A program made the translations under genes and the position numbers. This document shows, piece by piece, positions 33,801 through 62,886 of a stretch of DNA of 64,000 nt (within the stretch, counting starts at the first letter, position 1; every line of letters starts with the position of its first letter). Below the pieces are notes generated by a model. It saw nothing but the letters and a program-made list of their open reading frames with translations. It was not told the DNA's origin and ran no database searches. Source of the stretch: Convolutriloba macropyga (taxonomy: Eukaryota); the NCBI RefSeq assembly GCF_964194025.1, contig NC_134471.1, positions 31,558,001 to 31,622,000 on the forward strand, read 5' to 3'.

Positions 33801-34062
33801 GGCATTTGCGGGTGCCAAGTGGGCTTTCTCAGTTTTGAGAGCTCTGGCTGGTGAAGCAGGAGTTGTTGAATGCTCTTATGTTGAGTCAACTATCACGGAT
33901 GCTAAATATTTCTCGACGCCAATCCAGTTTAATAAAGATGGTATGGAAAAGAACCTTGGATTGCCTTCTGGAATCACTAAATTTGAGGAGGAATTGATCG
34001 CGGCTGCGGTTCCTGAATTGCAGGCCAGCATTAAGAAGGGAGAGGAGTTTGCGCACAAGTAG
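27839..34062 (+). CDS. MDH2: Mitochondrial malate dehydrogenase, exons 27839-27964, 28173-28511, 28916-29083, 33694-34062; 333 aa
   Basis: Presequence [85 protein letters not shown]. All three introns are phase 0 GT-AG; AATAAA at 34085. Confidence 0.97.
29351..30839 (+). mobile_element. Nested Helentron-like stack A[D[C]]: D 29400-30345, C 29826-30217
   Basis: TAATAGCCGCGAAGTGATAGCGGCTATTA is followed by the D 5' end at a T-run. C 3' GAGCAATT+CCGACATTTGTCGG; degenerate D 3'; A 3' GCGGCTATTTTCCGGCAATCTGC. Confidence 0.8.
30042..30113 (+). pseudogene. tRNA-derived segment (A/B box) inside a family C element
   Basis: A box TAGCGCAGTGG 30049-30059 and B box GGTTTGAATCC 30093-30103 with tRNA-like spacing; acceptor and anticodon stems do not pair well. 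Confidence 0.65.
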
Positions 34063-34453: not shown

Positions 34454-37400
34454 ATGACAGCTAATCCAGATCTGATTAAAAGTGTACTCGTGGAGCTTCT
34501 TGGAAAGGGACATAACGCTTTGAAATCAACCCCAGTCAGAAACGAACCGAAGCAATTGAAAAACCATGATGAAGAACGCAATAAAATAGACCACGATATT
34601 GAAGATAATTCGGATGCCTTTCCTTGCAGAGAAAGCCTCCAAGATTATTTAATCGAAGCCACTGGAGAATTTCATTTACAAGTCACCCGTTTCCAAAATG
34701 AAGGCGAAGGAAATTACGAGGCTGAAGTGAAGTTCCCGTGTGACACCATAGAGTACATGTACTCGTGGGTCGAAGATTTTGAGCGTGCTACTCGGTGTGT
34801 GTTACGACCGAAGCAAGTCGAAAGAGGGGCTCCGACGCCTATACTGAATATCCACAAGGCAAGGCAAAGATGTGCTTTAAAGAGTCTCGAACGACGAGTG
34901 CGGTAAGTAAGAATTATTCTTCGATAAACAGTTTAGTTCCGGAAGGAAAAGGTTTTGATAACCAGGAACATAAGTCTTAATCACTAGAAATCTGAAGTCT
35001 CAGGCACTAGGAACAAGTCTTGTGATCCAAAGGGAAATGGACAGCGTTTCACTCAATGCTTGCAGCTGCTTTTAATTAGATTTCCTCGCATGGCTTTAGT
35101 AATAGATGTCACAGTATGAAGTGACTGCATTGTCATGTCAGAGATTATAATATTTCAGGCCTGATGGCACCATACAATACGAGAGTGTAGACTGTTATGC
35201 CGGTGTCACGATGAGTCTAAGGAAAGATGGATTTGCTCACATCTCAATTGACATGGTACATAATCACAGTCTCAAAGGTTGGCCATTGCTTAAATGTCCA
35301 ATTGCTTCAAAACACTTGACTTTTCATCTTGCGATACGATAACTGAAAAGCTGAGATAGCGATAGCCGATCAGAGCTATTTTTGGCCTTTGTTTTCTTTC
35401 TCACGAATGGACTAGGAGTGTTGGTTTTCCTGAGTTTTTTTACTGGAAGTACAGGTGTGTTCAGGGTGACCTTAATGCAAACGTGAGTAAAATGGCTGTA
35501 TAGATTAATTTTTGCTGAGCGAGAGAAGGTTTTGTTCATGCGCTGCGTTGAGTGACTGACTCTGACTTCAATTTTTTTAATGCATAGTGCACAATGTTTA
35601 GCCTACTTTTGTCCATTTGGATCATTTTTTTGTTGTTGGGTTTTTATCTGTGCTGCATTATTATGTAACTCTATGGAAAAGATAATAGTGTTTTTGAGAA
35701 CCTAATAATGCGTTTAAGTGCAAAATCGGCTCACGTGCCCAATTTTTCCATTTTTGGCGTTCACAATAATTTCTGTTTTGAAGATATTTGAACGGATTTT
35801 GTTTTATTTTTACCCGAAGATGGCAATGTAAGTTTTATGAAGTTGCGAGGTTAAAAAAAATCTATCTTTCTATCTTTTAAAATTAATATTTGTTTTTAGT
35901 TCTCAAAATGTGAAGATAACGTTTCCTTTTTACAATGTGTCCTTTTTTACAATGTGTCCGTTACCTTCACATTCTATCATTTGGTACCTTTTCTTTTCTT
36001 CTAATTGTCAATGGTGAGTTGATTTGAAATTTTATTGGCTCTACCTTAATGAGTTCATAATAAATTTTAACCTTTTTTTCCGTACATTTTTTGTTTATTA
36101 TTGATTCCAACTAATGTAATGCAATGCAGTTCTGAGAACGTGTTGAACTTAATATTGCGAAATGATTGATTTTTATATTCTGAGAAATCCGTTGCGAACT
36201 AGGTTTTGGTAATTAACGAGTTCATGCTTATGAGTGTTTATCTGTTCCTTTTCTGTTTCCGGATGAATTTAAATTCTCAAAATTTTCAATGAAATAAAAT
36301 TCATTTTATCAAAGATTAATCCAAAAAGAGATCAAAATGCCAAAAATTAGTATTACCTTTAAGTTTAGAAGCTGAATAAGTATAGCTTTAGAATCCACCT
36401 GAGACTGCACGCCAAATTAGAAAACTTTTTACACTGAAAAAAAAAACAGAAAAAATTCGGTCAATGCATCTTTTTCTTTTTTCTTTGTTTCAATCCCGAT
36501 GTGCATCAAGCGCGTCAACGGTGGCTATTTTCCGGCAATCTGCCGGCTATTTTATCGTGGAACCCAAAATATTGTTTAAATTTTTAAAATTCAGTTCTAA
36601 GATTATTATTTATTTAATGCCCTTTCAATGTCTTTTGTGCCTCAACGTTAATTGAGTTCTGAATTTTTGATACCGGTTTTTGTGCAGCAATTTCTAGAAT
36701 TTCCCATTTTTATGTTGTTGAATTCTTGTCCATCTTCCTTTTTGAATTGTTTCTGAATAATTTGGTAAACATTTTCTATTTTTGCTTGCTTCAATGATTT
36801 TAATGCAAATTTATTTCATTTTCTCAGGGGTAAAATTTCGATCACCTATTTTTAATAATGATGTGGTAACGGATGATTTTTTCCAGACGATAAAGAAAAG
36901 TTTTGAATGCAGGGACATTTCGGTTTTTCTGGAAATTCAGCCTTTTCGAGTCTCTGCCGGACTTCTAACTTTTCTTGCCGACATTTTTGTCACAATTTTC
37001 AGACGTCACGCGCACTTCAAGTCAGTTCATATTCATTCTTTCATGAAATTTGCAGAGTTGTTCTTGGCGTAGTTTTCTCAGTAATTGGAGCAAGTTCTGT
37101 TCATTGGCGTGAATAAGTTTGTCACACTTGACTTGCCGCACTCTCAAAATGTTTTTCTTCTCAAATTTATATTTGCTAACTTTTATTGTTTTAAATTAGT
37201 TTAAATAAGTCCTAATCACTTTCTTGTCAATAGAGGTAGCATAGCTATTCTCCGGCAATCTGCCATCTATGTTAAGAACATAGGGCGTTGAGTCTGCAGA
37301 AATTCTTAGAGCTCTTCTAGCTTCTAAGTATGGGGCTCACAGAAACTGCGCAGGAGGCAAGTTCATGGTTTGATGGGTAATTCTGACACTTTGGTTTGTG

Positions 37401-40400
37401 GAGTTCTGTAGACTCTTAGAAACAAAATGTGGTGCTGTTTTGGACTAATTTGTTTTTACATAAAAGTTCAATGCGGACTGAAGTAATTTTTATCGATTTT
37501 TTCTGAAGTTCGAATGTTTTGGTTATGGAAGAATCTTATTTATATCTCAACTGCAGTATTTGTCTGACACATGGCGGAATAATTAATTTGATATCTGTAA
37601 TGATTTTTGAAGTCAAATGGTGTAGTGATTTTGGTCACGCCGAAACAGGAAATGGAGCGAAACAGTGAGTGGTTTTGAGGCTTGAAATGTTTTCACTTAA
37701 ATTATTTATAAGTAGAGTGAAAAAACGTTGATCGAACAAAAATTCGCTTGTGGTTTTTGTTCACATGCGGCATTTTGACTTTGATTTTTACTGTTTTCCC
37801 CCAATCCATCCATAGTCCAATCTTGAACTAGTTTTTGGTCAGTCCATGAAAATTCTTTGAACTGTTTCAGAACTTGTCGTGCTGTTTTAATTCGCTTTGC
37901 CTTTTGATTACGTTTTTCGTTTTACATAAGTTACGATTTTCACGTTTGACTCGTGACTTACTTTATCATTGCTTCAACTAAATGAATAATAAATCCTTTC
38001 ACTCATTGAATTACGCAATGTAGTGAATACTATCAATGTCAGAAGAGCAAAATTAAGAGAAACGGGATAAACCGATAATTTCCGGTCATCAAGTCATCTC
38101 GCATTAGGGTATCAAAGTTTATTAGAGCCATTGCTAGCTGACATTAGTCTTAAGCCTAAAAGCTTTGATTTTGTAGTTGATTAAAATCTGCTCTTTTTAG
38201 TTGTTTAAATTCTGCTGTTGTCACAAATTTTATTAGTTTTCTAGCTCTTGAAGTTTTTAATCATAAATTACTGTTACTGCACGTAACTTTTTTTTATTGA
38301 CAAATCCTGGAAATGTTTTGAATCATTGGTTTGTGCCCTTTTCTTGAGACCATTTGATGAAGTTAATTTTTTTGGTTCTGCTGCAACATTCTGAAGGCCT
38401 ATCAGACTTCAATTTTTAAACTTTGATTATTTTTTTTTTGGTCCAGGAGGTTGTTGACAAGAGGTGTTGTCGGAAAATTTTGCAAACGCACATTAATGAG
38501 TCGCCTTGTTTCGCTACATTGTCAAACGTACCAACTGTTTGATGATCCAGATGTTATTCGTTATAAGTCCTGCTCGCAAATTTTCTGTTTGTTATTAGTC
38601 GCGAAGCGATAGCGGCTATTATCGGGGACAGCGTGGTTTTTTACAATTCAAAGAACTTGAATTGTATTGGGGCGCTGTCTTTTTTTCTTTCAGATCTGTT
38701 CACACATTTTCATGATTTTTGAAGTCAAATTGGAGTAGTGATTTTGGTCACCATGAAACAGGAAGTGGAGCGAAAAAGCGATTGGTTTTGCGGCGTGAAT
38801 GTTTTTCGATCTATTTTTAAAGTAGAGTGAGAAAACGGTGTTTGAACTAAAATTCGCTTTCTCGGTAGTGGTTTTTTGTTCACATGCGGCAATTTCACTT
38901 TGATTTCTTACTGTTTTTTCGATATTTTAGATCAGATTTTTTTCCAATCCAATCGTAGTTCATTCTAGACCTAGTTTTTTGTTTGAACCAAATTTCCATT
39001 TCTCGCTAATGGTTTTTTTGTTCACATGCGGCTTTTTTACATTGATTTTCTGTTTTTTTTTATTTTTATCTGATTTTTTTGGAAATGGTTTTCCCAATTC
39101 GCTCATAATCCGTTCTAGGTCTAGTTTTTTGCTTAGTCAATGAAAATTCTTTGAATGCTTCAGGACTTGTCCTGCTATGTTTTTTCAATTCGTCGTCTCC
39201 ATCGATGATTCTTACGACCTGACTTCTTGAAAGTGACTTTTTCAATGACTTCAGCGACTTCTACTGCTTTGCAGATAAAATTTTTGTGCGTGACGTCATT
39301 TCTGCTTTTAGGTGAATTGCGTGACTTACCTCACTCAAAAAATGACTTCTGAACTCACTTATGGATTTTTAAGTTTTATGAACATTTACTAGTAAAGATC
39401 AGTAGTGTGCATCTAAGTAGTGTCAAACTTATATGCCCTAATTCTTTAGTATTATAGTCTTGAGTTTTTTATTTCGAATATTAATTTTGAAAAAGCGCCG
39501 CTAGGGCTTTTTCCTTTTAGAGCGTATGTGTCTCAAAAAAAAGGACAGGCCGAATCCAACCCAGAAAGTTTGGTCTATTAGAGGACTGGTGGTCAATCTG
39601 TCTATCTTATTTCTTTAGTTGTTTAAATTCCCTGGAATGCCACAAGCGTCTATCGCGGCTATTTTCCGGCAATCTGTCGGCTATGTTTTTAAATTGTCGT
39701 CTGCATCAAATTTGTTGCGACCATCTAATCAAGTGGAAAAGTATTTGATTACGCAGAAGTAGTAATTTTGTTTAGTAGCTTCCTATTTTTCTCAGTTACT
39801 CGAAATGTGTTCAGATGACGCGAAAATCTGGTCAACGCCTCACATTTCTTCTAAGCAAAAGCAGTTCATGGTAGATCTGTTCAAGGCTGGTCTTACTCCA
39901 GTGCAGATTTTGGATTACCTGAAGAGCACGCCTGTGAGTGCCGGAGAGGAAAGCTTCCCTGTCGCGTCCGGGCAGTGTTCGGCCATCAACAGAGATGGAT
40001 TTACTTGGCCAAACAGTTTGAGAAAGCTCACCTACCACCAGGTATGTTTAAAATTTGTATTGTTCACATAGCTGACGAGTGTAATATTTTTGAGTTTAAT
40101 CTCCTGCGTCTTGCTAATTGGTGCTGTTATTTGACCTCTCAAGAAGTTAGGTTTCTTTACTAAAATAATGAGTGCTCGGATAAAGAGGTAATGGTTCCAC
40201 GTCAGTCTAGATCTCTCAAAATTATCAAACTTAGGAGCTTTGGTATGATGTCATTTGTGATGTCTTGTAAAGCAGAGATGTTTTGTTTTTAGGTATACCA
40301 TACGTTCAAAAAATTCAAACAACAGAGCGTAGAGCAGAAGAAAAATCTTTTCGAGATGCGCAGTCGGTTGGAGAAAGAACTGGACATGCTCAAGATGAGA

Positions 40401-43400
40401 TTGTTTAAGAGTGAAATGCTCATGGCCTCTGCTCAGTGTTTCATCAATAGGACGTCTCTTCTCTCCGATCAAGAAGTAAGAGTGTACAGACGTCATATTA
40501 CTCATATGCACATAGTGAATAGATATTTGAACATGGGCACTTTCATGACGAGCAGTCTTTCAAACACATGATTGCGAACCATTTTTTTCCTCTGTTATTT
40601 TATGTTCTCAGGTCTGTATGATTTTGAGAATAAGATAAAACTGTGGTATAACTTAGACTGATCATTTCATATCGGTTCGAGAAATTTAAAATGTTGATGC
40701 AGTGAAGCAACTGACGTTCTAGCAAATTTATTATCTTTTCAGCTAGGAAAGTTCTTGCTTAGCCATTCTGAATGGTCACCCGAAGAACAAAAGGCGCAAA
40801 AACGCCGAGTGACAAATGAAGTATCAAAGAGAAGTAGCAATGACCGACTCAAATCTGTTAAGCAGAACAATGCGATTTCGGTCTTCACGAACAGATCTGT
40901 TAATCTCCAGTCGAATTCTGCCCCGATTCAGTGTTCGAAAAGCAAAACTCTTCATGACAAGTTAAGTGAATGTCGTCGGGAAGTGCGATCCTTGGACGGA
41001 TTCGAAGACCTTATTTCTTTTCACAATACGCCTAAAAGAGCCAAGATCGAGAAGTCGCAGTTTGTTCCAATTGAGACAATAGGTATGACTGAATACTGAG
41101 ATGCTTTTATCAACTTATGGTGCTATCCTTCGGCTTTCAAGTGTCATTTTATTTAAGTAGAAAACGCGATTCAATTTTTCATTTAGTTCTCTAGAACCAT
41201 CGTACGAATGTTTATCCAAAATCTGACTCAACTATTTTGTTTCATCATGCGTCTGGCTTCTAAGTTTAATTTGAATTTTATTATGAACAGTCTCATATTT
41301 TAAGCGCCATGATCCCTGATCCCTCGAATTTCACATACATGATACAAGCTCTATGCATTTGAAATACCATGAAATTCAGGGAGTATTCGTAAATGGAATT
41401 ATTTGGTACAAAATACTGAAGGGAAATCGTATTTGAAAGGCTCGCACCGATGTATGATTGTAAAATGGATTTTCCTCACTGATGGGAGCAATTTTACTCG
41501 CCTCTCTTGTACATAACAATTCTGAGCTTAATAGGGACTGTGATGTTTAGAACTGGGTTGCAATGAAAGCCCTCTTCGTACATGTGGCAGCTCGGATCAG
41601 CAGCCGAATACAGCCTCAAATGAGATTATTGAACTGCAAGACCCCGATGAACTTTACACAGGTCATTCGTCTCCTGTTGAGATCCTACAAGACGAGTGTT
41701 GTCTGGCCAGTGAAAACGCTGATGAGGGCAACTCTTATGAAGCTAATGCTGAATTGACTACTTGTAGTGATTTAACAGGAGAGATGACTCCGTGCAAAGT
41801 GAAGGATAGAACTGTAAAGGCTCAAAAAGCGTTCATGGAAACGTTGATGATGGTAAGTATCTCCTTTTGTATCCGGTTTCAGCGGGTCTTATTGAACATC
41901 GATAATACGTGTTAGATGGAAGCAATAAATACAATATTTCGTGGTTTCCTGAAAAGTACCAGTTATAAGGAGTGTCGCGTTCATATGTAAAATTGGCTGA
42001 CTCGAAGTATGACGGCATAATTTGGCGTAAAATTGATTCGAATGGTTATTAAAATTTGGTTTAATAGCCGCCGTCAGCCTCTCGAACAGCCATTATTTAG
42101 GCGCTCTCCTTTTTTATTACAATTCAAAGAATTTGAACTGTATTGGGGCGCTGTCTTTTTTTTTCTTTAAGATCTGTTCACACATTTTCATGATTATTGA
42201 AGTCAAATTGGAGTAGTGATTTTGGTCACCATGAAACAGGAAGTGGAGCGAAAAAGCGAGTGGTTTTGCGGCGTGAATGTTTTTCGCTCTAATATTGGCC
42301 TTCTCTTGGTTTTTTTTGCGACTTGAAGAGGAGTATTGGTGTTCTTAAGGTTTTTTTTACCGGAAGTACTGTTCGTTCAGACGCTGTTTTGACCTAAAAG
42401 CAAAAGTGAGAAAAATTGCCGTGTGAACTAATTTTTTCTGAGCGAGAAGTTTTTTGATCATGCGCTGCCTTTAGTGAATGACTTTTAGACTTTGAAAAGT
42501 AGTTTTTGACTGAACGGCAAATATAGATAACTGTTTTTAGCCCTTTCCCTATAACCGTTTCCAGCTCAAAATTGGCACATATTTCTTTTAGTTAATTTTT
42601 GGCTTTTTTTTCCTATTAATTTCTTCATTTTTGGATCTTTCAGCCGTCTTGTTGTCAAAAATCAGTTAATATGGCAGCGCAACTTCCCTTTGATAATTCA
42701 TATACTCAACGCCTCTTTCTACCTCGAGGTAATTTAGTTATATAAAATTATACATATGCTAATCCGATTTTGGTAGTTTTTTTTTCAATTTTTCTGTTTT
42801 TATGTATTTTGGTTTTAATTACTAGAAATAGTCTTTTTTGTGCAACTTGAGAAACGTTATTTTCGTTTTTACAGAAGTTCAATCATTTGTTAGCGTTAAG
42901 GTTTTGAAAAACAGTTAAAATTTGATAAATGCAGTCTTGAAAAATTTTTGACCATTCTTTGCAAAATGTTTCGTATGTTTGAATTCTGCTTTTTCTTTGT
43001 TCTGTTCTGGAGGATGGATCTTTGTCTCGGTTGACTCGTTGTCTGTTCCATGACTCAAATGCTGAACAACTAAATAAATGTATTCGTTTTTCATGGTTTT
43101 ATCAATTTGGTTTTTAACTTTCAAAAATCAAGAATTAGTCTTCGTTACGGCGTTCCTTACATTGTGTCCATATTCTTCACATTCTAGTTTGTATCATTCT
43201 AGATTTGTCCTGGCACCTACATTTATACTGGTTATATTGATTTTTTCAGTTGTTAAAAAATTGAATGATTTCAGCTTTTTCTTGAATGATTTGATGAAAT
43301 CGAATGATTTGAATGAAATTGAATGATTTGAATGATTTCAGGTTTTCGTCATTTCTCTGGTTTGCATTTGATTTGATTCAAAATAAGGCAGTACTGAGAG

Positions 43401-46400: not shown

Positions 46401-49400
46401 TCTGAGAAAAGTAGAGTGAATTCCGTTGTTTCTATTCACATTTTCCGGAATTTTTGCCTAAATTTTCGTTAATTTTGCTAAAATTTGTTAAAATTTTTAA
46501 GAATAGTGTTCTTAATGTAGTTTTAAAGAAAAAGTATTGTTGATTATTTTGATAATTTTTGTTGTCAAAAATTCTGGCTAAATATTTCAAAATTCAGCCT
46601 CTTTAGCCTAATTGTTGTGATAATCTTATTAAATAGATTAAATTGAGCTAGGGACTTGAACAAAACATATCCGCCGGTGCCAGCATTGGTTCCACAGGAT
46701 TATATTCCTGACACTTCGTTCCTAGCTTGACGGGCACTTGTTGTTGCTGTATCCTTTCTTCGTCGTCGGTGCCAGTATTGGTTCCATAGGCTACTTATTA
46801 AATAAAATCTTAATGCCTCCGCCAACACGTAACAATATCGGTTCCACCAGCGATGATCTAGTTGAAAAATTGATAGCATGCACGGCTACGAATTGTCCTG
46901 TACATAAAAAAGTTTTGGTAACCGCTAATTTTGACTGCTCTCAACCTTTCACTTGCGGCTTTTGTTGTGCTTCAAAATCAGTTGAAACCTTCAAAACCGT
47001 GCTCTGAAAAGGTTACGAATTGAAAAATGAGCAGAAGACTCGAGACACATTGTTTGCTGAAATTCAGCAAGAGCAATCACGTAAAGATGCAAAAAGATTA
47101 AATTTAACCGTAAAAGGGACAAAGCCATCTGACAATTGCGCTGGCTACGATATTGTTGAAAAGATTGCAAATCAAATTGACGTATCTCTTGTGTCACCTG
47201 ATATTCAGTTTAAATGGATTAGAAAACGACAACGTGATACAGGAAATCAGTTATTGCTTCGCAAGTTTATAGAAATGATAAAAACGAAATCAGTTTCTGC
47301 GTAAGTCAGTAGCATTGAGGGATTGTGAGAATTTCGATTGGGTATGTGTGTCACCAGACTTAACTAAGGCTGAAAGAGTACAACAGTACAATTTGCGATT
47401 GCAGAAATGTCAACTTGATAGTCAAAATCCTGCAATTATATACAAAATTTGTTGTGGTCGTGTACAACAACAACAGAATTGACTACAGGCAAATTACTCC
47501 TCTCAAATTTCGATCCTCCTTCTTAACGTTCAGAGCATTCTATCGATTGAAAGAGGGTTAATGCTTTGCCAGCTGTTAAGCTTAGTTCCGCCCGCTGTTG
47601 TCTGTCTAACAGAAACATGGCTTGATGGTTCGGTCAGTGATAATGGAGTTTTGTAGGTTACCCTTATGCAGTCGTTCTGCGATCAGATCGAACGGCCGGG
47701 CGTCATGTTGGACTCCTAGTAGCAATGAGTAACGCTTTCTTGAGTACTATTGTTTTAATTTATTAAAAGTGTGAGAATTTTTGTGTTCTTGTCTTAAGTA
47801 ACCAGATTCTTACTCTCTGCATTATACTTGCATATCTACTTCCTCGAGGATCGGTGTTTTATGTCAAACCTGGTGTTACAGAATTCAACTTGCGAAGTGT
47901 TTCTGCTGATGTGGAGGCAGGCCTAAGCTGCGATCAACGCAAATCTGGCCAGTGGATTCTACTTGGCGATTTTTTTTTCCCAAAATAGGTTGGGAGTCGA
48001 TCTCTTCGCCTCATTCTGATGAGCAAAAATTGTTCGAATTTTTATGCAATGATTTATTGCTTATCCAAATTGTTGATTTGCCTACTCATAAGCTTAGAAG
48101 TATTTTGGATCTAATTTTTTGCTCCCATCCCGACAAATGGGACTTCAATATTGTAGAGCGATTGTGCTCAGATCATTATCCTATTCTTTTAACAAATGTT
48201 GACCTAGATTACCAATATGCAAATGGGCACGATTATACGATCAGCTCTTTTAACGAGGTTGACTACTCTACGCATCCAACACTCTCACGATCTTTTGCCC
48301 AGAAATGCCACAACTTTAATCCTGATTTTCTATCAACGTTCTATCGTAAATTATTTTGCGCTCTCAACCAAAGTGTTCACAGAAAACTGAGAAAGCGCTT
48401 TGAAGCTCCCTTCTATTATTCACCGCAGACAATGCACTGTTTAAATAAACTAAATACAGCTCAAAAATATCAGAAAAATTCAGTTGAATGCCTCGAAAAG
48501 GAGCCTATGATTCTCATTGACATGGGCAAGCAGGTCTTGTTGAGCAGTGTACAGAAGTTTAATACAAATGAAGCGTTTGCTTTGTTGAAAAGTATAATTG
48601 GTAGAAGTTTCTTCCCTAAACAAATGTTCTACAAAAAGGAGATGTCTTTTGAAGGCTCAGTGAAAGCAAATCTGTTCAACACATTTTTTAAATCAATTTT
48701 TCAACCGAAAACTGAAATACGGTTAACTGACTGAAAACTGAAATACGGTGTGCGGCAATGAGAGCAAGTTATCTGATATTCAGTTCAGCCTTGACGAAAT
48801 TCAAAATTATCTAAGTGTCCAAAGTAGCTCAACTCCTGCTTTTGATGGTATACCGCCGACCATTTTAAGTAGAGCGGGGCACATACATTAGCACCATTTG
48901 TCCATTTTGTTTTCACATATATTATTCATTCGCAAATTTGGCCCGAGAATTGGAAATGTGCCTATGTTCCCCCTATTCACAAAAAGGAGCTCGAGCGGAC
49001 GTTGAAAATTATCGGCCTATTTCACTACTCCCGAAGTTGTCTTTAGTTTTAGAGAAAATTCTATTTCCGTTTATTTATCCGAAGATTAAAGATCGGCTGA
49101 ATCCTAGACAACATGGATTTCATGCAAAATATTCTACAGTTACGCAATTGCTCATATTTCTTATGAGTTCTATCTGAATTTGGACGGAAACGTTGAGGAA
49201 GTTGTTGTTTTTTTAGATTTCAGCAAAGCTTTTGATTCTCTGGACCACTCCACGCTGCTTTCAAAAATTGTTCGTTTTGGTTTTGACGAAGATTTTGTGA
49301 AACTTAATAATTCCTATTTATCGTCTAGACGGCAATGTGTTAAATTAGATGGGTTTTATATCAGAGAGACCCCTAGTTACTAGTGGTGTTCCCCGGGGAA

Positions 49401-50378
49401 GCGTGTTGGGACCTCTTTTCTTTTTAAATTTCATTGATGATGTGATTGATGTACCCGAAGTATCAAAAGTTTTCTGCTACGCCGACGAGACGAAATTGCT
49501 CTGCCATGGCGACTTCTGCTTGTATAGTGCTCCAAAATGATCTATGCTCGTTGCGGTTATGGGCTTATTGTTACTATTTGTCTTTTAATTCAGATAAAAG
49601 CGGTTATTTACATATTAATGGAATGTCATTGGATAATATACTTCTTGGTGAATTCGAGACTCCTTCGCTTGATAATATTACGGATCTGGGAATTCAGGTA
49701 TCCAAAACGTTGAAATGGAGTCTTCATCTTCAAACAAAAATAGTAAAAGCTGGTAGATCGCTCAATTACCTGAAGCACAGTGTTCCGTTCAACCTCCCAT
49801 CTGGTTTTAAATGCAATTTATTCAAGGCATGTGTTTTGTCGGTTCTTCTATATGGATGCCCTGCTTGGTTTCCTGAAATTTCGGATCTACGGAAACGAAC
49901 AGCTCATTATCCATGGCCTGCGTTGGTACTTTGGTTACAATGACTACAAATTTTTCAAGTTCGAATCAAAGGTTTCCAACCTACGCACTTTTGATCATGA
50001 ACGTCTGGCACGAGCTCAGAAAAGATGTACTGAAAAATCGTTTTTCTTCAGAGTTGAACGTATTATAAATGACGCCGCGGATTTAGTTAATGTCAGCATC
50101 AGTTTTTTCAAGGATACTTGCAAATCCAAAACAGCAACTCGAAATCTACTAATGGCAATGAGAAATGATAAGTTTGATTTTGTTTTATCCTGCACGTGGT
50201 ACTTTAGGTGTAGATGTAATTTCTGTATAGCATGACTTTCTGTTCAATTAATGATTTTTTTTTCTAGCTGTTACATAATTCATATTCTTTATCTTTGTTT
50301 TATCTTTGTGCTACCATTTTTATTATCATCCTTGTTTATACCCTCAGAAGGTACTTGAATTCTTATACTACTACTACA

Positions 50379-50424
<46 letters not shown>

Positions 50425-53400: not shown

Positions 53401-56400
53401 CTAAGCGAGAGAAGTGTTTTGATCATGCGCTGCGTTTAGTGAATGACTTTTTGACTTTGAAAAGTAGTTTTTGACTGAAATGCAAATATAGATAACCGTT
53501 TTTAGCCGTTTTTTCGTCTAAGTGGCCCAAATTTTTTGCTTTTAAATTGGTTCCTTGTAGAAATAAATTCTATTCGATACTATATTGAAATTTCAACCTC
53601 GGAAATTGATACCAGTGTTTTGCAGAGCCTGAAAATGCGTTTCAAGTTGAAAATTGGCACATAATTCTTGGTTTTTTTTTGTTAATTTTTGGCTTTTTTC
53701 TTTTAATTTCTTCTTTTTTGGATCTTTTAACCGTTTTTTTATGTCAAAAATCAGTTAATATAGCAATTTCTCTCACTGAAAATTCCTATACTCAACGCCT
53801 CTTTCTACCTCGATGTAATTTTGTTCAATGAAATTGTACTTATGCTAATCCGATTTTGGTAGTTTTTTCCGATTTTCATCAGTTTTTTGTTTGTATTTTG
53901 GTTGTAATTGCTAGAAATAGATTTTTTGTGCAACATGAGGGACTTTAATTTCGTTTCAATAAAAATTCAATGATTTTTTGGCGTTAAGTTTTGAGAAAAC
54001 AATTAAATCTTTTTCATAAATGCAGTCTTAACTTAAAAGTTCTTTGACCATTTTTTTTGCAAATGTTTCAATGTTTCTTATTTATGAATTCTGCTTTTTC
54101 CTATTTTTTGGTGTCTCAGGAGGATAGATTTTTGTATCGGATGAGTAGTTATCTTTTCTCTGTCTTGAATGCTGAACAATGAAATGTATTCGTTTTTCTT
54201 GAATTTTTTAAATTGATTTTAAACTTTCAAAAATCAAGAAACTCCTTTTGTTACGGTGTTCCTTACATTGTGCCAATATTCTTCACATTCTAGTTATTGT
54301 CATTCTAGCTTTGTCTTGGCACCTAATTTTATTTTCGGTATATTGATTTTTTTTAGTTGTAAAAAATGAACGATTTCAGCTTTTTCTTAGATTTTTGTCA
54401 TTTCTTTGGTGTACAATTGATTTCATTCAACAAATGGCAGTACTGAGAAATTGATAGCAAGCCTCTTCCAAAATTTCTACTTATGACTATCTATTGCAGC
54501 TTTCTTCCGGCCTTGGTGTTAATTTAAACGATTTTTTGCCTTTGAATATTCTTCTGCTGCTTATGTCTTTTCTATGATCAATTTTATTTCTGATTTAGTA
54601 GGAAATCATGTTGTCTAGCTTATGTACAAAGAGGAACAGTTTGTGTGTGTTGTTTTTTGTCTTAATCGCAGTGATTAGAAGTGTAATCATAGGTGTTTTC
54701 TGATTCTTAAATTTGAGCTTTCTTTTTTAAAAAGATTTAACTTAGTTTCTAAGATTATTATCTGCCGTTTGCTTTCGCGATCTTTTTCAGATTAGAATCA
54801 TGAATTATTTGAGGGCTATTGATAACCTTGCAAGCTTTTTCAGACTATCAGGTTTTTTTGACCACCTTAATTATTTTGGATTTCTAACGTTACCAAACGT
54901 TTTCAATAATATAAAATTTTGCTGCATTTTGTTTCTCTTGTTGACAGTGGTTTAAGTTTCACCAATTTTTTTAGCAGACCTGGAGAGGTAGTGAGTTAAT
55001 GGTTTAATACAAAATGTAGTGGCTTCCGCTGCAATTACGGTTTTGTTAGCAAAGTTTTAACGCTTCGAGTCGCTTCCGGAATTCTTCCGGCTATGTTTTT
55101 CACTTCGTCAAACTTTTTTTCGCTTTACCATTTTGCCGCTTTTTCGACATTTTGCGTGAAATCTTTTTGACTTCTGTAGGCTAGTTTCTCTCTTCTCTCA
55201 TTCTGCTAAAAGTGAATTTGAACATCAGTTGCTAAGCAAAGCAATTCAAAATGAACAGAGTCGGTATAAAAAATTGAAGTCAGAAATAGAAACGGGATAA
55301 ACCCATAAAGCCCAATTTTAGATGCCCGCTATTTGAATGTCGTTCCTATAAGTCTTAGTTTCCACCTCTAATGCTTATTGGTGTTGATAGTAGCCCCTGT
55401 AGCCTCTCTCTAAGAAACAGAAGTACGTTATGTTCAACTACGAAATGCCATCAAAATAGATCGGACTTTAAAAATATTTTTGTACAAAAATTTTTGTTTT
55501 TCAATATATTCTATTTGTTCAATCCCAATCATGCTTATTGGAATCAACGGCGGCTATTTTCCGGCAATCTGCCGGGTATGTTTTTAATTGCTCTCAAATT
55601 TGTAGCAATTATATTAGTCAAGTTTGTCTTGTGCGATTTTTCGCTGAACCGATTTGTCGTCTGACCCATTTGACTTTTTGTCCTCAAAAACGGGATAAAC
55701 AGGTAGCGCCCATTGGGCATTAAGTTCTCTATATTTCATTCTCATTAAGTTCTTTCAGCTCGCTATTCTCTAAGTATGCGAAACTGTATTGGAGACTTAT
55801 ACTTACGGTGTGAAGGGCGGTTATTCGAAGTTGACCCCTCATCACCCCCCGCCCTTACTTCACCCCCAATCCCCAGCCTTGCACATTGTCCAGGCCGTAA
55901 GAGCCCCGTGTAGCCAAGGACATCCCTCGCAACGTTGCCCCTTCAAGTAGGCTAAAGCTAGGCTCACTAAACCGTGGCTAGCTACTGACAAAGCCAACCC
56001 CTCGCCGGTCGTTGTTTATTTTTTATTGCTCTCAAACTAATTGCTTTTTAGATTAGTGCTGTTGGTCACTAAACCACGTAGCTCGCACGCATGCTCGATC
56101 CTCTTGAGATCCCTACTGCGCTCACCCCATTCCATTACCCCCTCCCCCCAATATACCCCTTTTCCCCCTATCAGTTAAGCTTAGGCAAACCGCGCTTAAC
56201 CCGGCTAGCTAATGACAAATCCAACTTGGTAGTCTCGCGGTGTTAGTCATTTGAGAGCAATTCGTCCAAAGTTAGTTGGTTATTCGAATTGGGCTAGAAG
56301 CTTCCAAAATTAGAAATTTGATTTGCATTTTATCCGCTCTTATAAACTTTTAAGTTAAGCTCCTAGTTGATAACCTTTTTATTTGTCTAGTTGAGCACCT

Positions 56401-59400
56401 AGTTATAGACGGTTTGTATCTCTTCTTGTTCTGTTCTCTTTATTATAGTTTCTTTAGTTCTGCTGATTTACCTGTAAATAATGAATGACAGACAGACTAG
56501 TTTTCTGGAGCGCCTAGTACTCTAGCTGCTGCATCCAAACTGAAAAAGTGTCAGATATTAGGACGGTACAAAATTGCACGAAAAGGTAGGAACATCATAG
56601 CTGAAGTTTACCTTGGACAGTATTGATAACATTTTTAAGATTACTTCATCTGAAGCATCATGTGTCTTTTTAAAATTAACTAATTATGCTCGTCTGTTCA
56701 GAGTGGAGGCAAAAGGCTTACTCCAATCAGAAGGACAAATTTTCTGACCCCGACCAAAGCCACTCCCAAAGATTTTTTGGTGACTCCGGACTTCACCAGA
56801 CCACACAAACCCAAGCAGCGAGCAAATGGAACTACCAATTATGGTATGATTGGACTGGATCGCTCGAAAGAGTAGTTGTGTTCCAAGACTTCAATTATAC
56901 TTTAAATATCTATGTGCTTGTCATCATTTTAGGTTATTCTTTGGTGTTCGTTTTAAAATTTTCTGTGTGATTCGGTTTTCTCATAATTGAGCTCCCTCAC
57001 TTGCAAAAAATGGCCTCAATTTAATTATAATGTCAAATTGAGACTACCAACGCTAATTAAAGGTCATAGATTAGAGTTAACCTTAGTCTTTCGAATGTTG
57101 ACGTCAGATAAAGGATGCAAGAAAATTCGGAAGTTCAGTTCGTTGAGTTTTATATTGTTTATGCGTGATGTGAATATCAGTGATCTTTATTTTTAAGCCG
57201 TACAAGGTGGTGTTATTCGCCAGTTCTTTTTGTTAACATGTTGATCTTTATTAAAAAGTTTTGTTTGCAATTAGTTCGTTGTTTGTTAATAGCAGCCCTC
57301 ATCTTCTCAGTCGGCTGTTATTGTAGTTCTACTTTTGCGAGTCGAAGGAGAGTAAAGGTGACAAGTATTTTTTTTTAAATGGCGACTAGTTCAGAAAGAG
57401 AGCAGCGGGTGTTTGGTGTGAAAAAAAGTATTTTGCTAACCCAGCAAACCTTTTCAGCCAAAGTGGCTTCTCTCATAATTATTTTGAATTAATTGTACGT
57501 TTTGGGAGCGTATTTAATCATACCACATTTGTTCGATTTAAATGAAATTTTTTAGCTATTTTATTTTTCGTTTTTAATTGCTCTCAAACGAAGTTTGTAC
57601 CAATTATATTGGTCCTGTCGGTCTTTTTTATGCGATTTCGCTTGACCGATTTTTCGTCTGACGCTTTTGACTTTTCGTCCTCAAAAACGGAATAAACAGG
57701 TAGCGCCCAGCGGGCATTAAGTGCTCTTAGAGCCTTTCAGCTCTATTTCAGCTCAAACTGTTTTGGAGACTTATACTTATGGTGTGAAGGGCGGTTCTTA
57801 GAGGTTGAAGACACTCCACCCCCACTAGGGTTTATAATAGGTTACTGCATAGTTTCTAATGGTAGTGCAATTGTTTCAACTTTTTAACACGCATTTTAGC
57901 ATTTTTTGACAAAACGTCCAAATTTTTTCAATTTCATTCACTGCATTGCTTTTAGTGGTAATAGAATGGTTTTCAGTGTTTTAACATCACGAATTTTGCA
58001 ATTTTTTATAAAACTTGCATTTTTCAAATTTAAAAAATTTGTTGTCATTATCTAAGTTTTACGAGACCCAGGAGACAGGAAGTCTCCTATAGCGTTTGAT
58101 AATAGTGTACTAAAAATTTTTAGTGGCCAAGGAATGGTTTTCATCATTTTATTATTACAAATTTTAGCAAAATTTTTTTGAAATATTTTGTCATTTTTTA
58201 GGTTTCTCAAACCTCAAGGGCAGACGAACCTCCTGCAGGGTTTGACAATAGGTTACTGCATAGCTTCTAGAGGTAATAGAAGGGTTTTTAACTTTTTAGC
58301 ATCACAAATTTTAGCAATTTGTGTATGAAACTTGCATTTTTTTAAATTTTTAAAAAATATTTTGTCATTTTTAGGTTTCTCCAACCTCAAGGGCCACCCA
58401 ACCTCCACCGGGGTTTGATAATAGATTACTGCATAGTTTCTAGTGGTAATGGAATGGTTTTTCAACTTGACATCACGAATTTTAGCAATTTATCTGACAA
58501 AACCTGCAATTTTTTCAAGTTTTTTGAAAATTGTCATTTTCTAGGTTTCTCCAACCTGAAGGGCCGGCCAGCGAATCACCTCGAGCGTTTGATTATTAAT
58601 GTAAATCTTTTGGATGTAATTGAATGGTCTTCAAGATTTTATTATCAATATTTTTTAAAAAATATTTGCATTTTTTTCAAGTTTTTTCGATCTTTTTGAA
58701 TTTTTTATCTTTTTTCCGGCACCAGGGTCCAAGTTCTCCTCCAAGGTTTGATGATAGGCTGTTGCATAGTTTCTAGAGTTAATGGAATGGTTATCAATAT
58801 TTTAACAATTTATGCTTTAACAATTTATGAGCCAGTCAAACTATTTAAAGCTTGAACTAGGGATACTGGATTGTCTCTTGAGACAATGAAATCATTTTGA
58901 AGATTTTAATATATTGAATTTCAGCAAGATTTTGTGTAAAATTTGCAATTGTTTTCAAAATTTTTGATTATTTTTGTCCTTCTACGATCATTACTGGCCA
59001 ACGAAGCTTTTCAAGTCAAGCAGATGAGTTACTTGACATAAGTCCAGAGACAAAAAATAGTTTTTAACATTTTCACTGCAAAATCTGGAAGCTTTTTAAA
59101 ATTTTGCAATATTTCGCAGTTTTTTTAAAAATCAGTTTTTTATTTGATTTATTTACTAAAAAGGCTAGAAAACTAAAATTTGCAGAGTCGAATCATGCTA
59201 AAGCTAGCCTCACTAAACTGTGGCTAGCTACTGACAAAGCCAACCGCTCGCCGGTCGTTTGAGAGCAATTTGCCCGACGTTAGTCGGTTATGTTAGAATC
59301 TTTTTATAGCGATTTATTTATCCTTCTCTAAGGTTTTCAAATTTTGTTATCTAATTTTTGGCGTTTTCTGTTTATCCTTCTTTTGAGCTTTGGGAAAACT

Positions 59401-62400
59401 TCTCTTTTCAGATTAGTAGATTTGTTTTGATACTCAAAGGAGACAACTGAACGTTTTTGAAGAGACTGTTACTGAAGTAAATAAAGTATTTTGTATTTTC
59501 TAACGGTTTTTCGTTTCTGCCCTTGTTTTAATTTCTGTTCACTGTGTTCTCTGTCGTGTGGATGGTGACCATGCAGCATCTTAAGAGCTTAGAGCATGAA
59601 AGTTCTCTCAAGAAGGTTGTTGGGAAATCGAAGCATTTGAACTTGTAGAAATTATTGAAAAACTTGCTAAAATATTTCGAGTTTCTTTTCACTTGGTTTT
59701 TTTTCGTTATATTTGGTTTTCGCTGCCATTTGGTTTGCCATTTAATGAACTAACTGTGTAGCAGGGCAGTCTGCGGAGAGTATTTGTTTTGGAGTCATAT
59801 ACCTTGGAGGCGAATATTTGAACCTGTAAAGAATTTTCCAGAAAATTTGTTTCCGACTCTGCTTTTTATCAATTGATCTCTAACGACGTTTGAAACAATG
59901 ATTGTGAATGAAGTTTGAAGCCGTTATTTTAATTGTGTTGCTGTAATGAATTTTTTTGCTGGACTGTTTTGACTTACCGAGTGACTTTTACGACCTTGAA
60001 TTTTTCTATCTGAATTTCTTCATTCACAAATGTCACCAGCTGAACTCCAGTAGCAGCAGTTGACGACTAAAAGTCGAATAAGAATGCGCCAAAATTGGTG
60101 TATTTTTTTGCTTCGCATTATTCTATTGGTTATAATGGTATATAATAACCTCTAATTGCGCCATTTGGAACCCCCTTTGTGAATTTAGTTGCTCCCCGTT
60201 CCGACTGAAGTAGGCTGCAATAGATTTGAGCTCCAACTATTCGTTCGAGAGCAGTTCTTCCGACGTTAGTCGGTTGTTTTTTCCTCGAATTTCTTATTTG
60301 TCTACCGTTCTTTGTTCCTTATCTATAAGTATATTGGAGATACTTTTGAGGCTAGCGAGTAAGTAGCTATGGTCTACGTCAAGTTTTACTTTGAGTTGAA
60401 TTCGGGTCGATTCCAGAGTCTTTCGGCAATGTTTTTACAGTACAAAAAATTGATTGTGTTAGTGCTGTCTTTTGTAACGTGTTCATACATTTTTTGATGA
60501 CTAAGCTTTCAGAACGGGATAAAAAGGTACCGCACAGTAGTCACAGTAGTCATTAAGTGGTATTATAGTCATCACACTTGCTGTATTAGTTTTCAGCACT
60601 ACTGAATTTTCTGAAAGTGTTGGGAAGGCCTACATCAAGCTGAAAATGTTGCTTTTTGAAGTTTTTGGGACCAGCATAAAACAATTCTGTTTGTGTCCAG
60701 TTTTTAAAAGTTTTTTTTTATTTATCGGTTTGTGATGAAGTTTTGTCATAGGTGTTAGTCGTATGCTATAGGAACTGTATCAAAAAATGTCATTGTGATT
60801 CATATATTTTCTTGATTCCATATTTTACACGAAATTTTATCATTATTCAGATTTTTATGGGATATTAAAACTTATAACTTGCAGACCAGATAGTGGGTAG
60901 ATTTTTGTAGCTCCAAAAATATTGCTTTGTTTGCCGAATTTAGCTTTTTAAGTTTGTTTGTTTTTTGCTTCGTTTTGTCTTTTCTCTATGTCCAGCCATG
61001 TTTCTGGTTGCCTTAGAGGTTGTTGTTTTGCCGATTTTGGTGACAACCAGTTGGTTTGCCGAGGAATATAAACATTAAAGAGTTTTGCAACTTTATTTTC
61101 AGAAATTTTGCATTTCAATTATTTTGTCGAGTTTGAGGGGCCAGAATGTTTTGTTGATCTTGCGTCTTTGTTGCGTATTTTCACCGGCAAAATATTGTTT
61201 CGAAGACTAGCTTTAAGATCCATGATCAAGTTTTTGCGAAAGGCTCTAATTTTCTTAGATTTTTTTTACAGCTTTTGTTTTTTTGCCAGTGCTCCTTATC
61301 TTTTCGTTCTCTTATATGTTAAGTAAGGTGTCTGTCAAGTAGCTATTTATTCTTGAGTTTTTTCCGTTTTTGATTAGGAATTTTGATTTTAACACCAAAA
61401 ATATCAACAAGTTTATTTTTCACAAAATATATGGCATTTTGAAGTTTTTTCATTCAATACTTTGCATTGTATTTCAAAAATTTCACCTGCTGTGTTTTTT
61501 TGTCAAATGAAAATTTTGCTTCATCCAAATTTGCCGTTTTTTGACATTTTGCGTGAAATCCTTCTGACTTCTCTGAGTTTTTTCTTCGCTCATTTTGCTC
61601 AAAGTCAATATTGTAAACGAAATCAAAAATGGAAACCGTGTAAACGAAGTCAATATCGTAACCAAATTAGAAATTGAAACGGGAAAAACCCGATATGGTC
61701 GTTTTAGGTGCCGGGTATTTGTACTTTGTTCTAATCGATTGGTCTTAATTGCCAGCTCTTAAGCTTATTGCTAGTGGTACTAATCCTTGTACCGTCCTAT
61801 TGAGAAGCAGTAGTATGCCTAATTACAAAATCCAATCGAAATACCGAGCGCTTTTGTCATTTTTTTGTGTAACAATCAATTTTCCTGTTCTTGTTTCAAT
61901 CCCAATCGTGGTCATGGGAATCAATTCAACTGTTGATATTGAATGTCTGTTGCCATTGGTTTTAGTAATTTGCTTTTGTGACTTACCTGGCTTTTCGTTA
62001 TTTTAATTTTGAGAAAATTAACGATAAGTTTTGAGTTTTTTAGTGTGAACTCAGCTTATAAACCATTGCGAAATAGGAGTGAACGCAGAACTGCTAGAAT
62101 TATTTTATTTTGTTGCATCGGGCATGATTTCAGCAACTCCTGGCGGAAGCAGTCGGAAACCAACACTGTCGTTGGAAGAGCTTCTGAAAACACCTCCGAC
62201 AACAGGACCGTTCGGACGAATTCATTTCCCTACGCCTGGCTCTACATTTTGTCTACTTGAAGATGAAACAAGCTTACCTCATGTTGATTTATCCACCGAT
62301 GACGAGGCCGATACTATTGATAAAACAGAATCAAATTACAAATCAAATTTTCCCTCGAATTTCTCACCTACTGTTCACTTTTTGTCGAGGTTGACGCCCG

Positions 62401-62441
62401 ATGGGAAGAGTTTTGGGTGCAATAATTCATCAACCCATTAA
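34454..62441 (+). CDS. Uncharacterised ~701-aa protein with FAR1/WRKY-GCM1 (MULE-type) zinc finger; predicted exons 34454-34902, 35159-35277, 39779-40041, 40293-40475, 40743-41082, 41551-41852, 56702-56843, 62134-62441
   Basis: All junctions are GT-AG with compatible phases (2,1,0,0,1,0,1), giving a 2106-nt open frame. C-x21-C-x21-H-N-H spans exons 1-2, followed by KQKQFMVDLFKAGLTPVQILDYL and LTYHQVYH. The exon 3 acceptor and the link across the 14.8-kb intron are the least certain parts. Confidence 0.72.
38593..39685 (+). mobile_element. Nested Helentron-like stack A[D]: D 38643-39179
   Basis: Same architecture and A body (AATTCGTCGTCTCCATCG) as 29351-30839 but without the C insert; intact D and A 3' hairpins. 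Confidence 0.85.
42062..45852 (+). mobile_element. Complex nested Helentron-like cluster: A, several D copies (one complete at 44543-44941) and B 42318-44055
   Basis: A 5' at 42062; D 5' at 42118 and 44543; B ends at 42318/44055; D 3' at ~44536, 44941 and 45358; A 3' at 45852. 44585-45075 is nearly identical to 18470-18965. Confidence 0.8.
46660..50423 (+). mobile_element. Near full-length decayed CR1/L2-clade LINE with (TAC)n tail, inside the largest intron of the zinc-finger gene
   Basis: ORF1 from ATG 46813 (CTATNC..CGFC). APE endonuclease motifs (LNVQS, CLTETWL, LDLIF, SDHYP). RT motifs (NYRPISLL, QHGF, DFSKAFD, GVPRGSVLGP, YADETK). End CTWYFRCRCNFC*, then (TAC)n 50366-50423. Many frameshifts; the 5' boundary is approximate. 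Confidence 0.92.
53225..55580 (+). mobile_element. Nested Helentron-like stack A[B]: B 53279-55095 (homologous to 42318-44055)
   Basis: The A 5' end matches 17290 and B sits in the T-run behind it. After CTTCGAGTCGCTTCCGGAATTCTTCCGGCTATG the A body (ACTTCGTC.AACTTTTTTTCGC) resumes. Confidence 0.87.
57575..59292 (+). mobile_element. Family C Helentron-like element with an expanded central tandem array
   Basis: 5' TAATTGCTCTCAAACG; 3' TTTGAGAGCAATT+CCGACGTTAGTCGG+TTATG; the flanks of the array match 55585-56015. Confidence 0.8.
57828..59150. repeat. Degenerate tandem repeat, ~145-175-bp units, about 7-8 copies
   Basis: GGGTTTGATAATAG.TTACTGCATAGTTTCTAG-like motif at 57828, 58092, 58238, 58411, 58586 and 58744, with weaker copies beyond. 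Confidence 0.8.
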
Positions 62442-62587: not shown

Positions 62588-62886
62588 GGTGTCCCGCCTT
62601 ATCACCGCGTTTAATTTCAGGCCCTATCATTGCACCCAGATTAATTCACACCTATATCATTTCACCCCGATTTTAATTCCTTAATAAATTGGTTAACTTA
62701 ACATACAAAATATGAGATGCGTAGTGTTTGGGTGAAGAGTTTAGGGATTAACACTCAAAGTTAGATTCGTCAGGCTTGGGAAAGGGCTTCTGGGGTAAAG
62801 TTTGCGGGTGAAATTATATAAAGGTTTAAGATTATGATGCTAAATTTTTTTGGGATTAATGAATCAGGGTGATAAGAAGTAGAACC
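62588..62886. mobile_element. 299-bp MITE with degenerate TIRs and perfect 9-bp TSD (Mutator-like)
   Basis: CTTTTCAAC at 62579-62587 and 62887-62895; ends GGTGTCCCGCCTTATCACC / GGTGATAAGAAGTAGAACC. Confidence 0.78.

Follow-up and report, generated by a model that had tools for sequence, protein, structure and literature searches.

A lineage-restricted acoel gene with a candidate Mutator-type zinc finger and a tail of conserved S/T-P sites

Zinc fingers of the insert-containing WRKY-GCM1 family, in which the two cysteines are separated by an often basic insert of ~20-70 residues, represent the layout seen in FAR1-type Mutator-like elements (MULEs), including an N-terminal helix, and transposase-free members of the family occur in animals (PMC1702500). 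The plant FAR1/FHY3 (FRS) proteins (PF03101) are encoded by host genes that descend from FAR1-type MULE transposases and are nuclear DNA binders (PMC1702500); they retain both the MULE core and a SWIM finger. Animals have their own version of this finger in ZSWIM1 and ZSWIM3 (ZSWIM3_N, PF21599), which are domesticated, single-copy host genes that likewise retain RNase H-like and SWIM domains (PF21056). The fungal Rcs1/Aft1, Aft2 and Rbf1 have kept the finger only, being MULE derivatives turned transcription factors that are confined to one lineage and evolve fast (PMC1702500). Here we describe a gene of the acoel Convolutriloba macropyga that may belong beside them. It lies on the + strand at 34454-62441 of a window of 64,000 nucleotides (the whole stretch analysed, positions 31,558,001 to 31,622,000 of NC_134471.1, assembly GCF_964194025.1; all coordinates below are those of the window), and its product is read, with somewhat more confidence than doubt, as a nuclear, sequence-specific DNA-binding protein with a Mutator-derived finger head and a phosphosite tail.

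Like FAR1/FHY3, the acoel protein carries near its N-terminus a C...C...HNH motif that has a long insert between the cysteines and predicted helices before and after it. Unlike FAR1/FHY3 and ZSWIM1/3 it is devoid of the transposase core and of the SWIM finger, and unlike what is known of FAR1/FHY3 it is an animal protein with a long S/T-P-rich tail; no match at the level of Pfam connects the two. It shares with ZSWIM1/3 the status of a single-copy gene. With the fungal factors it would share the reduction to the finger, although the C-terminal part is different and the likeness comes without demonstrated sequence similarity. The MULEs of C. macropyga with FLYWCH-type fingers also belong to the WRKY-GCM1 superfamily and end their finger in HNH, but their cysteines stand close together (C-x6-12-C) and they have a W-x-C motif, are multicopy and contain the transposase core, and comparison of their copies with the acoel gene by phmmer and hhalign was not significant.

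The gene is composed of eight stop-free pieces that can be joined through canonical GT-AG sites in compatible phases, as proposed in a preliminary description of this DNA made from its letters alone, which also pointed out correctly that exons 2 and 7 are missing from the list of open reading frames (ORFs); both are stop-free stretches without a start codon. The start ATG of exon 1 is preceded by an in-frame TGA, the exon 1 donor reads GCG/gtaagt, exon 2 is bordered by the acceptor tttcag/G and the donor AAG/gt, and an AATAAA is located downstream of exon 8 at 62683-62688. The GC content is 44.6% in the coding sequence and 34.5% in the introns. For exon 3 there is a choice of two acceptors in the same frame, 39776 and 39815, the first of which would add 13 residues and leads to the length of ~701 residues given originally. 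The exon 2/3 junction that the other three species share (HNH-x-L-[KS]/D...) results only from the acceptor at 39815, so that the spliced protein stands at a corrected length of 689 residues. The features are as follows, with secondary structure of exon 1 taken from a low-confidence AlphaFold2 (AF2) model.

34454..34902, + strand: exon 1, residues 1-149, ending in phase 2; conserved N-terminal helix, predicted beta hairpin, predicted helix at residues 97-113, and N-terminal half of the finger, as far as Cys140
34715..35277, + strand: candidate FAR1/ZSWIM3_N-like (insert-type WRKY-GCM1) zinc finger, residues 88-189, interrupted by intron 1 (34903-35158)
35159..35277, + strand: exon 2, residues 150-189; C-terminal half of the finger, containing Cys162 and His184-Asn-His186
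39815..40041, + strand: exon 3, residues 190-265
39850..39927, + strand: helix-turn-helix-like pair, residues 202-213 and 218-227, around the invariant core DLF-AGLTPV
40293..40475, + strand: exon 4, residues 266-326; basic stretch, then a long amphipathic helix, possibly a coiled coil
40743..41082, + strand: exon 5, residues 327-439; little conserved linker ending in a conserved F-x-D/N-L-I-x-F-x-N-[ST]-P-[KR] basic patch
41551..41852, + strand: exon 6, residues 440-540; ELGC-ESP-[LI]-R, SSP-[VI]-E motif, TP-x-K site and AQKAFMETLM
56702..56843, + strand: exon 7, residues 541-587; block GKR-x-TP-x-R-x-TNFLTPTKATPKD...TPD, in which four TP sites are conserved
62134..62441, + strand: exon 8, residues 588-689 and the stop codon TAA; S-L-E-[ED]-L-[LF]-[KR]-TP motif, F-x-TPGS and FPSNFSPT

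The resulting protein agrees at every residue with RefSeq XP_075243103.1 of C. macropyga (“uncharacterized protein LOC142337621”). The gene had been introduced as hidden, which does not hold, since RefSeq already contains exactly this model; apart from the label “uncharacterized”, no name, domain or literature was found for the LOC142337621 protein. In Symsagittifera roscoffensis the orthologue rebuilt from contig L011 has 656 residues and its RefSeq counterpart XP_063723134.1 has 657, the two differing by a 3-bp indel polymorphism (one residue) and a few substitutions. The splicing pattern is deduced from the two RefSeq models and from conservation, and the junction HNHSLK/DD..., which is identical in the RefSeq product, is common to the orthologous loci L011, L019 and L053. 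Introns 1-3 likewise keep their positions and phases among the orthologues.

A search of 1.84 billion representatives with exon 1 retrieved only three clusters, all of them exon-sized ORFs, and a profile built from exon 1 added a relative in a fourth acoel assembly, while exon 1, its profile and a profile of the tail gave no match to any annotated protein outside acoels. Among these representatives, no relatives were found outside four acoel assemblies (C. macropyga, S. roscoffensis and two others, termed species 3 and species 4), in line with the lineage-specific character supposed at the outset. The assumed setting among housekeeping genes is also borne out, as the gene is found directly downstream of a SNARE gene and an MDH gene, in the same order, in all four assemblies. 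Exon 1 is 44% and 40% identical to the orthologous ORFs P0002 and P0003, and exon 2 is 68% and 42% identical to its orthologous exons. The best-conserved segment is exon 4 (62% identity to S. roscoffensis, 43% to species 3), and exon 7 reaches 62% identity to the tail of S. roscoffensis, where exons 7 and 8 are fused. The protein is ~47% identical between C. macropyga and S. roscoffensis, compared with 85% for the adjoining MDH exon.

Purifying selection acts on the gene both at the level of polymorphism and at that of divergence. Three S. roscoffensis haplotypes, which are 98.5-98.9% identical with introns included, keep all frames intact, differ by one in-frame indel and have a pN/pS of 0.19-0.33. 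Exons 1-4 of species 3 and species 4 are 66.8% identical, with dN 0.24, dS ~2.2 and an omega of 0.11, so that the comparison of dN and dS in relatives, suggested earlier as a check, indicates constraint. Between C. macropyga and S. roscoffensis the synonymous sites are saturated (pS 0.87, with pN 0.35). We conclude that this is a real, constrained host gene restricted to convolutid-type acoels.

Its status as a host gene is also reflected in its copy number. The C. macropyga assembly that was searched comprises 1,175,981,408 bases in 4,694 scaffolds (genome note, PMC13650328), and within these 1.18 Gb the gene occurs only once. The assembly has at least 69 MULE domains, with none of these matches inside the locus, and the MULE/DDE transposase core (PF10551) was matched neither by any exon nor by either RefSeq protein. 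No inverted repeats were found flanking 34454-62441. The absence of a DDE domain and of terminal inverted repeats (TIRs), observed in the preliminary description, is thereby confirmed, and the many dispersed TIR-flanked copies that it had named as evidence to the contrary were not found. An autonomous Mutator-like element, which would need a core, TIRs and multiple copies, is not what this locus contains. A phmmer comparison with 120 ORFs from 36 loci with MULE or FAR1 hits gave no match, and the profile of ZSWIM3_N (PF21599) matched nowhere in the genome, the locus included, as was also true at the locus for PF03101.

FAR1-like MULE transposases do occur in the assembly, intact at L013 and L014, but only on small contigs with 56-60% GC (C895, C3027, C282, C1304 and C3927, corresponding to L013, L014, L020, L022 and L023), as opposed to 34-38% in the host. 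Their close relatives in the database number only three, and these contigs are probably green-algal symbiont sequence left in the assembly, presumably from the Tetraselmis symbiont named in a preprint. Separately, a 39-residue intron-less look-alike of the exon 2/3 junction, 46% identical, was noticed on chromosome 3 (L059, G000:C3:69481073-69484327, locus positions 1498-1614). It was rejected as a retrocopy because it stands in the context of a LINE (long interspersed nuclear element) reverse transcriptase, has no similarity at the DNA level and reaches a genome-wide E of 0.079; the resemblance is probably due to chance, with a very old retrocopy as the other possibility.

The case for a Mutator-type head starts from the ligands. 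The motif quoted in the preliminary description as WVEDFERAT...RC-x21-C-x21-HNH is present as C140-x21-C162-x21-H184-N-H186, and the putative zinc ligands (C, C and H-x-H, in the pattern C-x17-21-C-x21-HNH) are invariant in all four species. The insert between the cysteines is K/R-rich and comprises 21, 20, 17 and 17 residues, which is within the range of the insert-containing family, at its low end. In the AF2 model a helix at residues 97-113 directly precedes the first strand (pLDDT ~50-60). An Atlas language-model search with exon 1, which does not contain the C...HNH half, placed ZSWIM3_N (that is, ZSWIM1/ZSWIM3), FAR1 and AFT (PF08731) on top with a score of 0.87, and the ten best named matches all belonged to one clan, WRKY-GCM1. 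From the other half of the domain, exon 2 of species 3 matched Pfam FAR1 (PF03101) at positions 59-88 (15.2 bits, E 0.038), which is exactly the half that would be expected. Co-folding of exon 1 (residues 56-149), zinc and exon 2 reached a score of 0.48, against 0.26 for the best of three controls, with runs agreeing in at least 51% of contacts and a partner pLDDT of at least 56. In the calibration of this approach, scores of 0.60 or less took in no more than 5 of the 78 solved complexes and every one of the 4 mismatches that passed, so that the result gives a weak hint that exons 1 and 2 may form one domain.

Several observations weigh against a Mutator-type head. The Atlas score for exon 1, based on 145 shared features, lies in the range that the tool grades as a lead only, and the weak FAR1 match is seen in just one of the four orthologous exon 2 pieces, amid about a dozen spurious ones. 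The contiguous finger region of both RefSeq proteins has no match to FAR1, ZSWIM3_N or FLYWCH at E<=10. Profile comparison by hhalign was not significant, either with algal FAR1-like MULE heads or with the FLYWCH heads of the host (E 0.079). The tryptophan of strand 4, which is typically present in the insert family (PMC1702500), is replaced by F, F, I and F in the four species, at the equivalent position nine residues before the HNH. AF2 performed poorly on exon 1 alone (pLDDT 46). Finally, the resident chromosomal MULEs that were scanned, two long ORFs, carry FLYWCH heads and are thus not of the FAR1 type. Other searches were equally negative: with Pfam, all exon pieces of the four species and the full proteins gave nothing over threshold, and both RefSeq proteins, whole or cut to the domain, gave nothing above the curated cut-offs (28.1 or 27.8 bits); three profiles had no match by sequence in the PDB; and Atlas returned no usable match for exon 2 alone or for exon 3. 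The weak unrelated Pfam matches (among them T2SSM, Aft1_HRA, SP2_C and DNA_pol3_beta_2) were dismissed, and a fold search with the exon 1 model was meaningless, with bacterial lipoproteins on top at a template modelling (TM) score of at most 0.46. A FLYWCH finger (PF04500, W-x-C-x6-12-C-x17-22-H-x-H) does not describe the head, which has 17-21 residues between the cysteines and no Pfam match. The assignment to the Mutator/FAR1 finger made at the outset is therefore retained in part: the ligand pattern and two weak WRKY-GCM1 signals speak for it, while Pfam and the profile comparisons do not.

These negative results are what would be expected if the gene were an acoel orphan whose Cys/His head has a fold peculiar to it, or some other fold that binds zinc, without descent from Mutator, the FAR1-like spacing having arisen by convergence or coincidence. 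The architecture would be the same, with a folded head, then a helix, and a disordered tail regulated by phosphorylation. Such an origin agrees with the lack of a Pfam family both for the whole proteins and for the uninterrupted domain, with the empty PDB searches and profile comparisons, and with the confinement to four acoel assemblies, and we consider it a possible, if doubtful, alternative. It leaves unaccounted for that two different methods, applied to non-overlapping halves of the domain, pointed to the same small clan out of ~24,700 families, and that a helix, C...C...HxH and a helix pair fit the published description of the family (PMC1702500). The head probably belongs to the Mutator/FAR1 finger family, and its identity as a FAR1/ZSWIM3_N-like finger is favoured, if by a modest degree of belief.

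The finger is followed by the helical segment KQKQFMVDLFKAGLTPVQILDYL recognized in the preliminary description, which is predicted to form a helix pair. In an AF2 model of the three-species alignment A3, helices were predicted at positions 12-23 and 28-37, corresponding to residues 202-213 and 218-227, with a pLDDT of 72-79, and they surround the invariant DLF-AGLTPV core. In exon 4 hydrophobic residues recur at a spacing of 3-4, as read from the sequence, and the amphipathic helix may possibly form a coiled coil.

In the remainder of the protein, residues 327-689, the amino acids S, T, P, K and E are abundant. The 14 S/T-P sites and the five S/T-P-x-K/R sites among them (TPKR, SPLR, TPCK, TPIR and TPTK) had been counted before, and the count is correct; it exceeds the 5.6 +/- 2.0 S/T-P sites expected by chance and was reached in 1 of 5000 shuffles. 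In S. roscoffensis 11 of the 14 S/T-P sites and all five S/T-P-x-K/R sites are kept in a tail of 26-56% identity (background ~45%). Conserved blocks are F-x-D/N-L-I-x-F-x-N-[ST]-P-[KR] with its basic patch, SSP-[VI]-E, NFLTPTKATPKD, S-L-E-[ED]-L-[LF]-[KR]-TP and FPSNFSPT. The basic patch at the end of exon 5 is a candidate nuclear localisation signal located beside a phosphosite. A pair of motifs ~45 residues apart, [VN]-F-x-TP-x-K ... S-L-[ED]-[ED]-L-[LF]-[KR]-TP, recurs in species 3 and species 4, whose tails are otherwise unalignable: a hidden Markov model of the C. macropyga and S. roscoffensis tails did not detect the tail of species 3, which emerged only from the comparison of species 3 with species 4. 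S/T-P and S/T-P-x-K/R sites are clustered and conserved in a disordered region, as in substrates of cyclin-dependent kinases (CDKs) or mitogen-activated protein kinases (MAPKs). To judge from its motifs, the tail resembles a kinase-regulated docking region; both the identity of the kinase and a link to the cell cycle are inferred.

Taken as a DNA-binding protein with a Mutator-derived head, the protein would be built as follows. A FAR1/ZSWIM3-type Mutator-like transposase would be the source of the first ~265 residues, which would correspond to its DNA-binding head: a C-C-H-H zinc finger, preceded by a helix and of the WRKY-GCM1 kind that contains an insert, and then a helix-turn-helix-like pair. 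The transposase core would have been lost. The amphipathic helix of ~50 residues may dimerise the protein, and in the disordered tail of ~360 residues conserved proline-directed phosphosites and short linear motifs would allow CDK- or MAPK-type kinases to control its localisation or its partners. It can further be imagined, although this is unlikely as a whole, that convolutid acoels (Convolutriloba/Symsagittifera) recruited a FAR1-type head, dropped the enzyme and added the dimerising helix and a CDK/Polo-style docking tail, giving rise to a lineage-specific, cell-cycle-gated DNA-binding factor, for example in proliferating stem cells or in silencing Mutator elements.

Tails of this kind are found in many CDK-substrate adaptors, and acoel proteins are generally divergent. 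Together with the difference in identity to S. roscoffensis between the protein and the neighbouring MDH exon, this would also suit an orthologue of some conserved bilaterian protein of the nucleus or the cell cycle, changed so rapidly that sequence comparison fails to reveal it. We regard such an origin as quite improbable, given that exon 1, its profile and the tail profile matched no annotated protein outside acoels and that a Pfam domain is lacking, and we know of no conserved animal protein with such a head architecture. A non-functional locus, whether open frames strung together by chance, a pseudogene or what is left of a transposon, is hardly credible in view of the exon structure and frame kept in four species, the frames intact in all haplotypes, the selection described above, RefSeq models made in two species independently of the present reconstruction, and a single, syntenic copy without TIRs.

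Intron 6 contains at 46700-50235 a decayed LINE in sense orientation, with RVT_1 fragments (E 4.5e-5 and 5e-4) spread over several frames; an open stretch of 274 residues upstream of these fragments has no match in Pfam. Intron 7 (56844-62133) is missing in S. roscoffensis, species 3 and species 4, where the coding pieces are continuous, and was therefore probably gained on the way to C. macropyga; neither inverted nor direct repeats were found at its ends. Within it, at 57800-58850, lies a degenerate tandem-like array of units of ~150-170 bp that are 60-80% alike. A short dispersed repeat is seen in introns 2 and 6 at ~36464, 39619, 45738 and 55538, and a second intronic repeat, with the translation ...NSKNL(N/I)CIGALSFF..., at ~38567, 42037 and 44509; both are probably short interspersed nuclear elements (SINEs) or miniature inverted-repeat transposable elements (MITEs), or similar to these. 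The MDH gene at 28916-34059 has in C. macropyga a 4.6-kb intron (29090-33693) within a part that S. roscoffensis encodes in a single ORF of 178 residues. Species 4 (seen at L053 10320-12920) has an extra intron of its own that splits exon 1. On one of its contigs (ENA ERZ25074608) the block of SNARE, L21e and MDH with exons 1a, 1b and 2 is present twice, ~120 kb apart (L053 and L054); in the second copy the match ends after exon 2 and an integrase (rve) ORF is located downstream, so that the doubling is either a partial segmental duplication or an assembly artefact.

Since finger-only MULE derivatives are already known and the gene is already annotated as uncharacterized, the finding is best seen as a probable further case. 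Should the head prove not to be such a finger, a fast-evolving, constrained orphan nuclear phosphoprotein of modest interest would remain. The gene is conserved in four species, the conserved motifs of its tail lend themselves to direct tests, and two RefSeq “uncharacterized proteins” gain a testable functional hypothesis. If the head is of the Mutator type, the gene would be a clean animal example of finger-only transposase domestication, a counterpart of yeast Aft1/Rcs1, in the Xenacoelomorpha, a phylum-level lineage whose lineage-specific regulators are almost unstudied.

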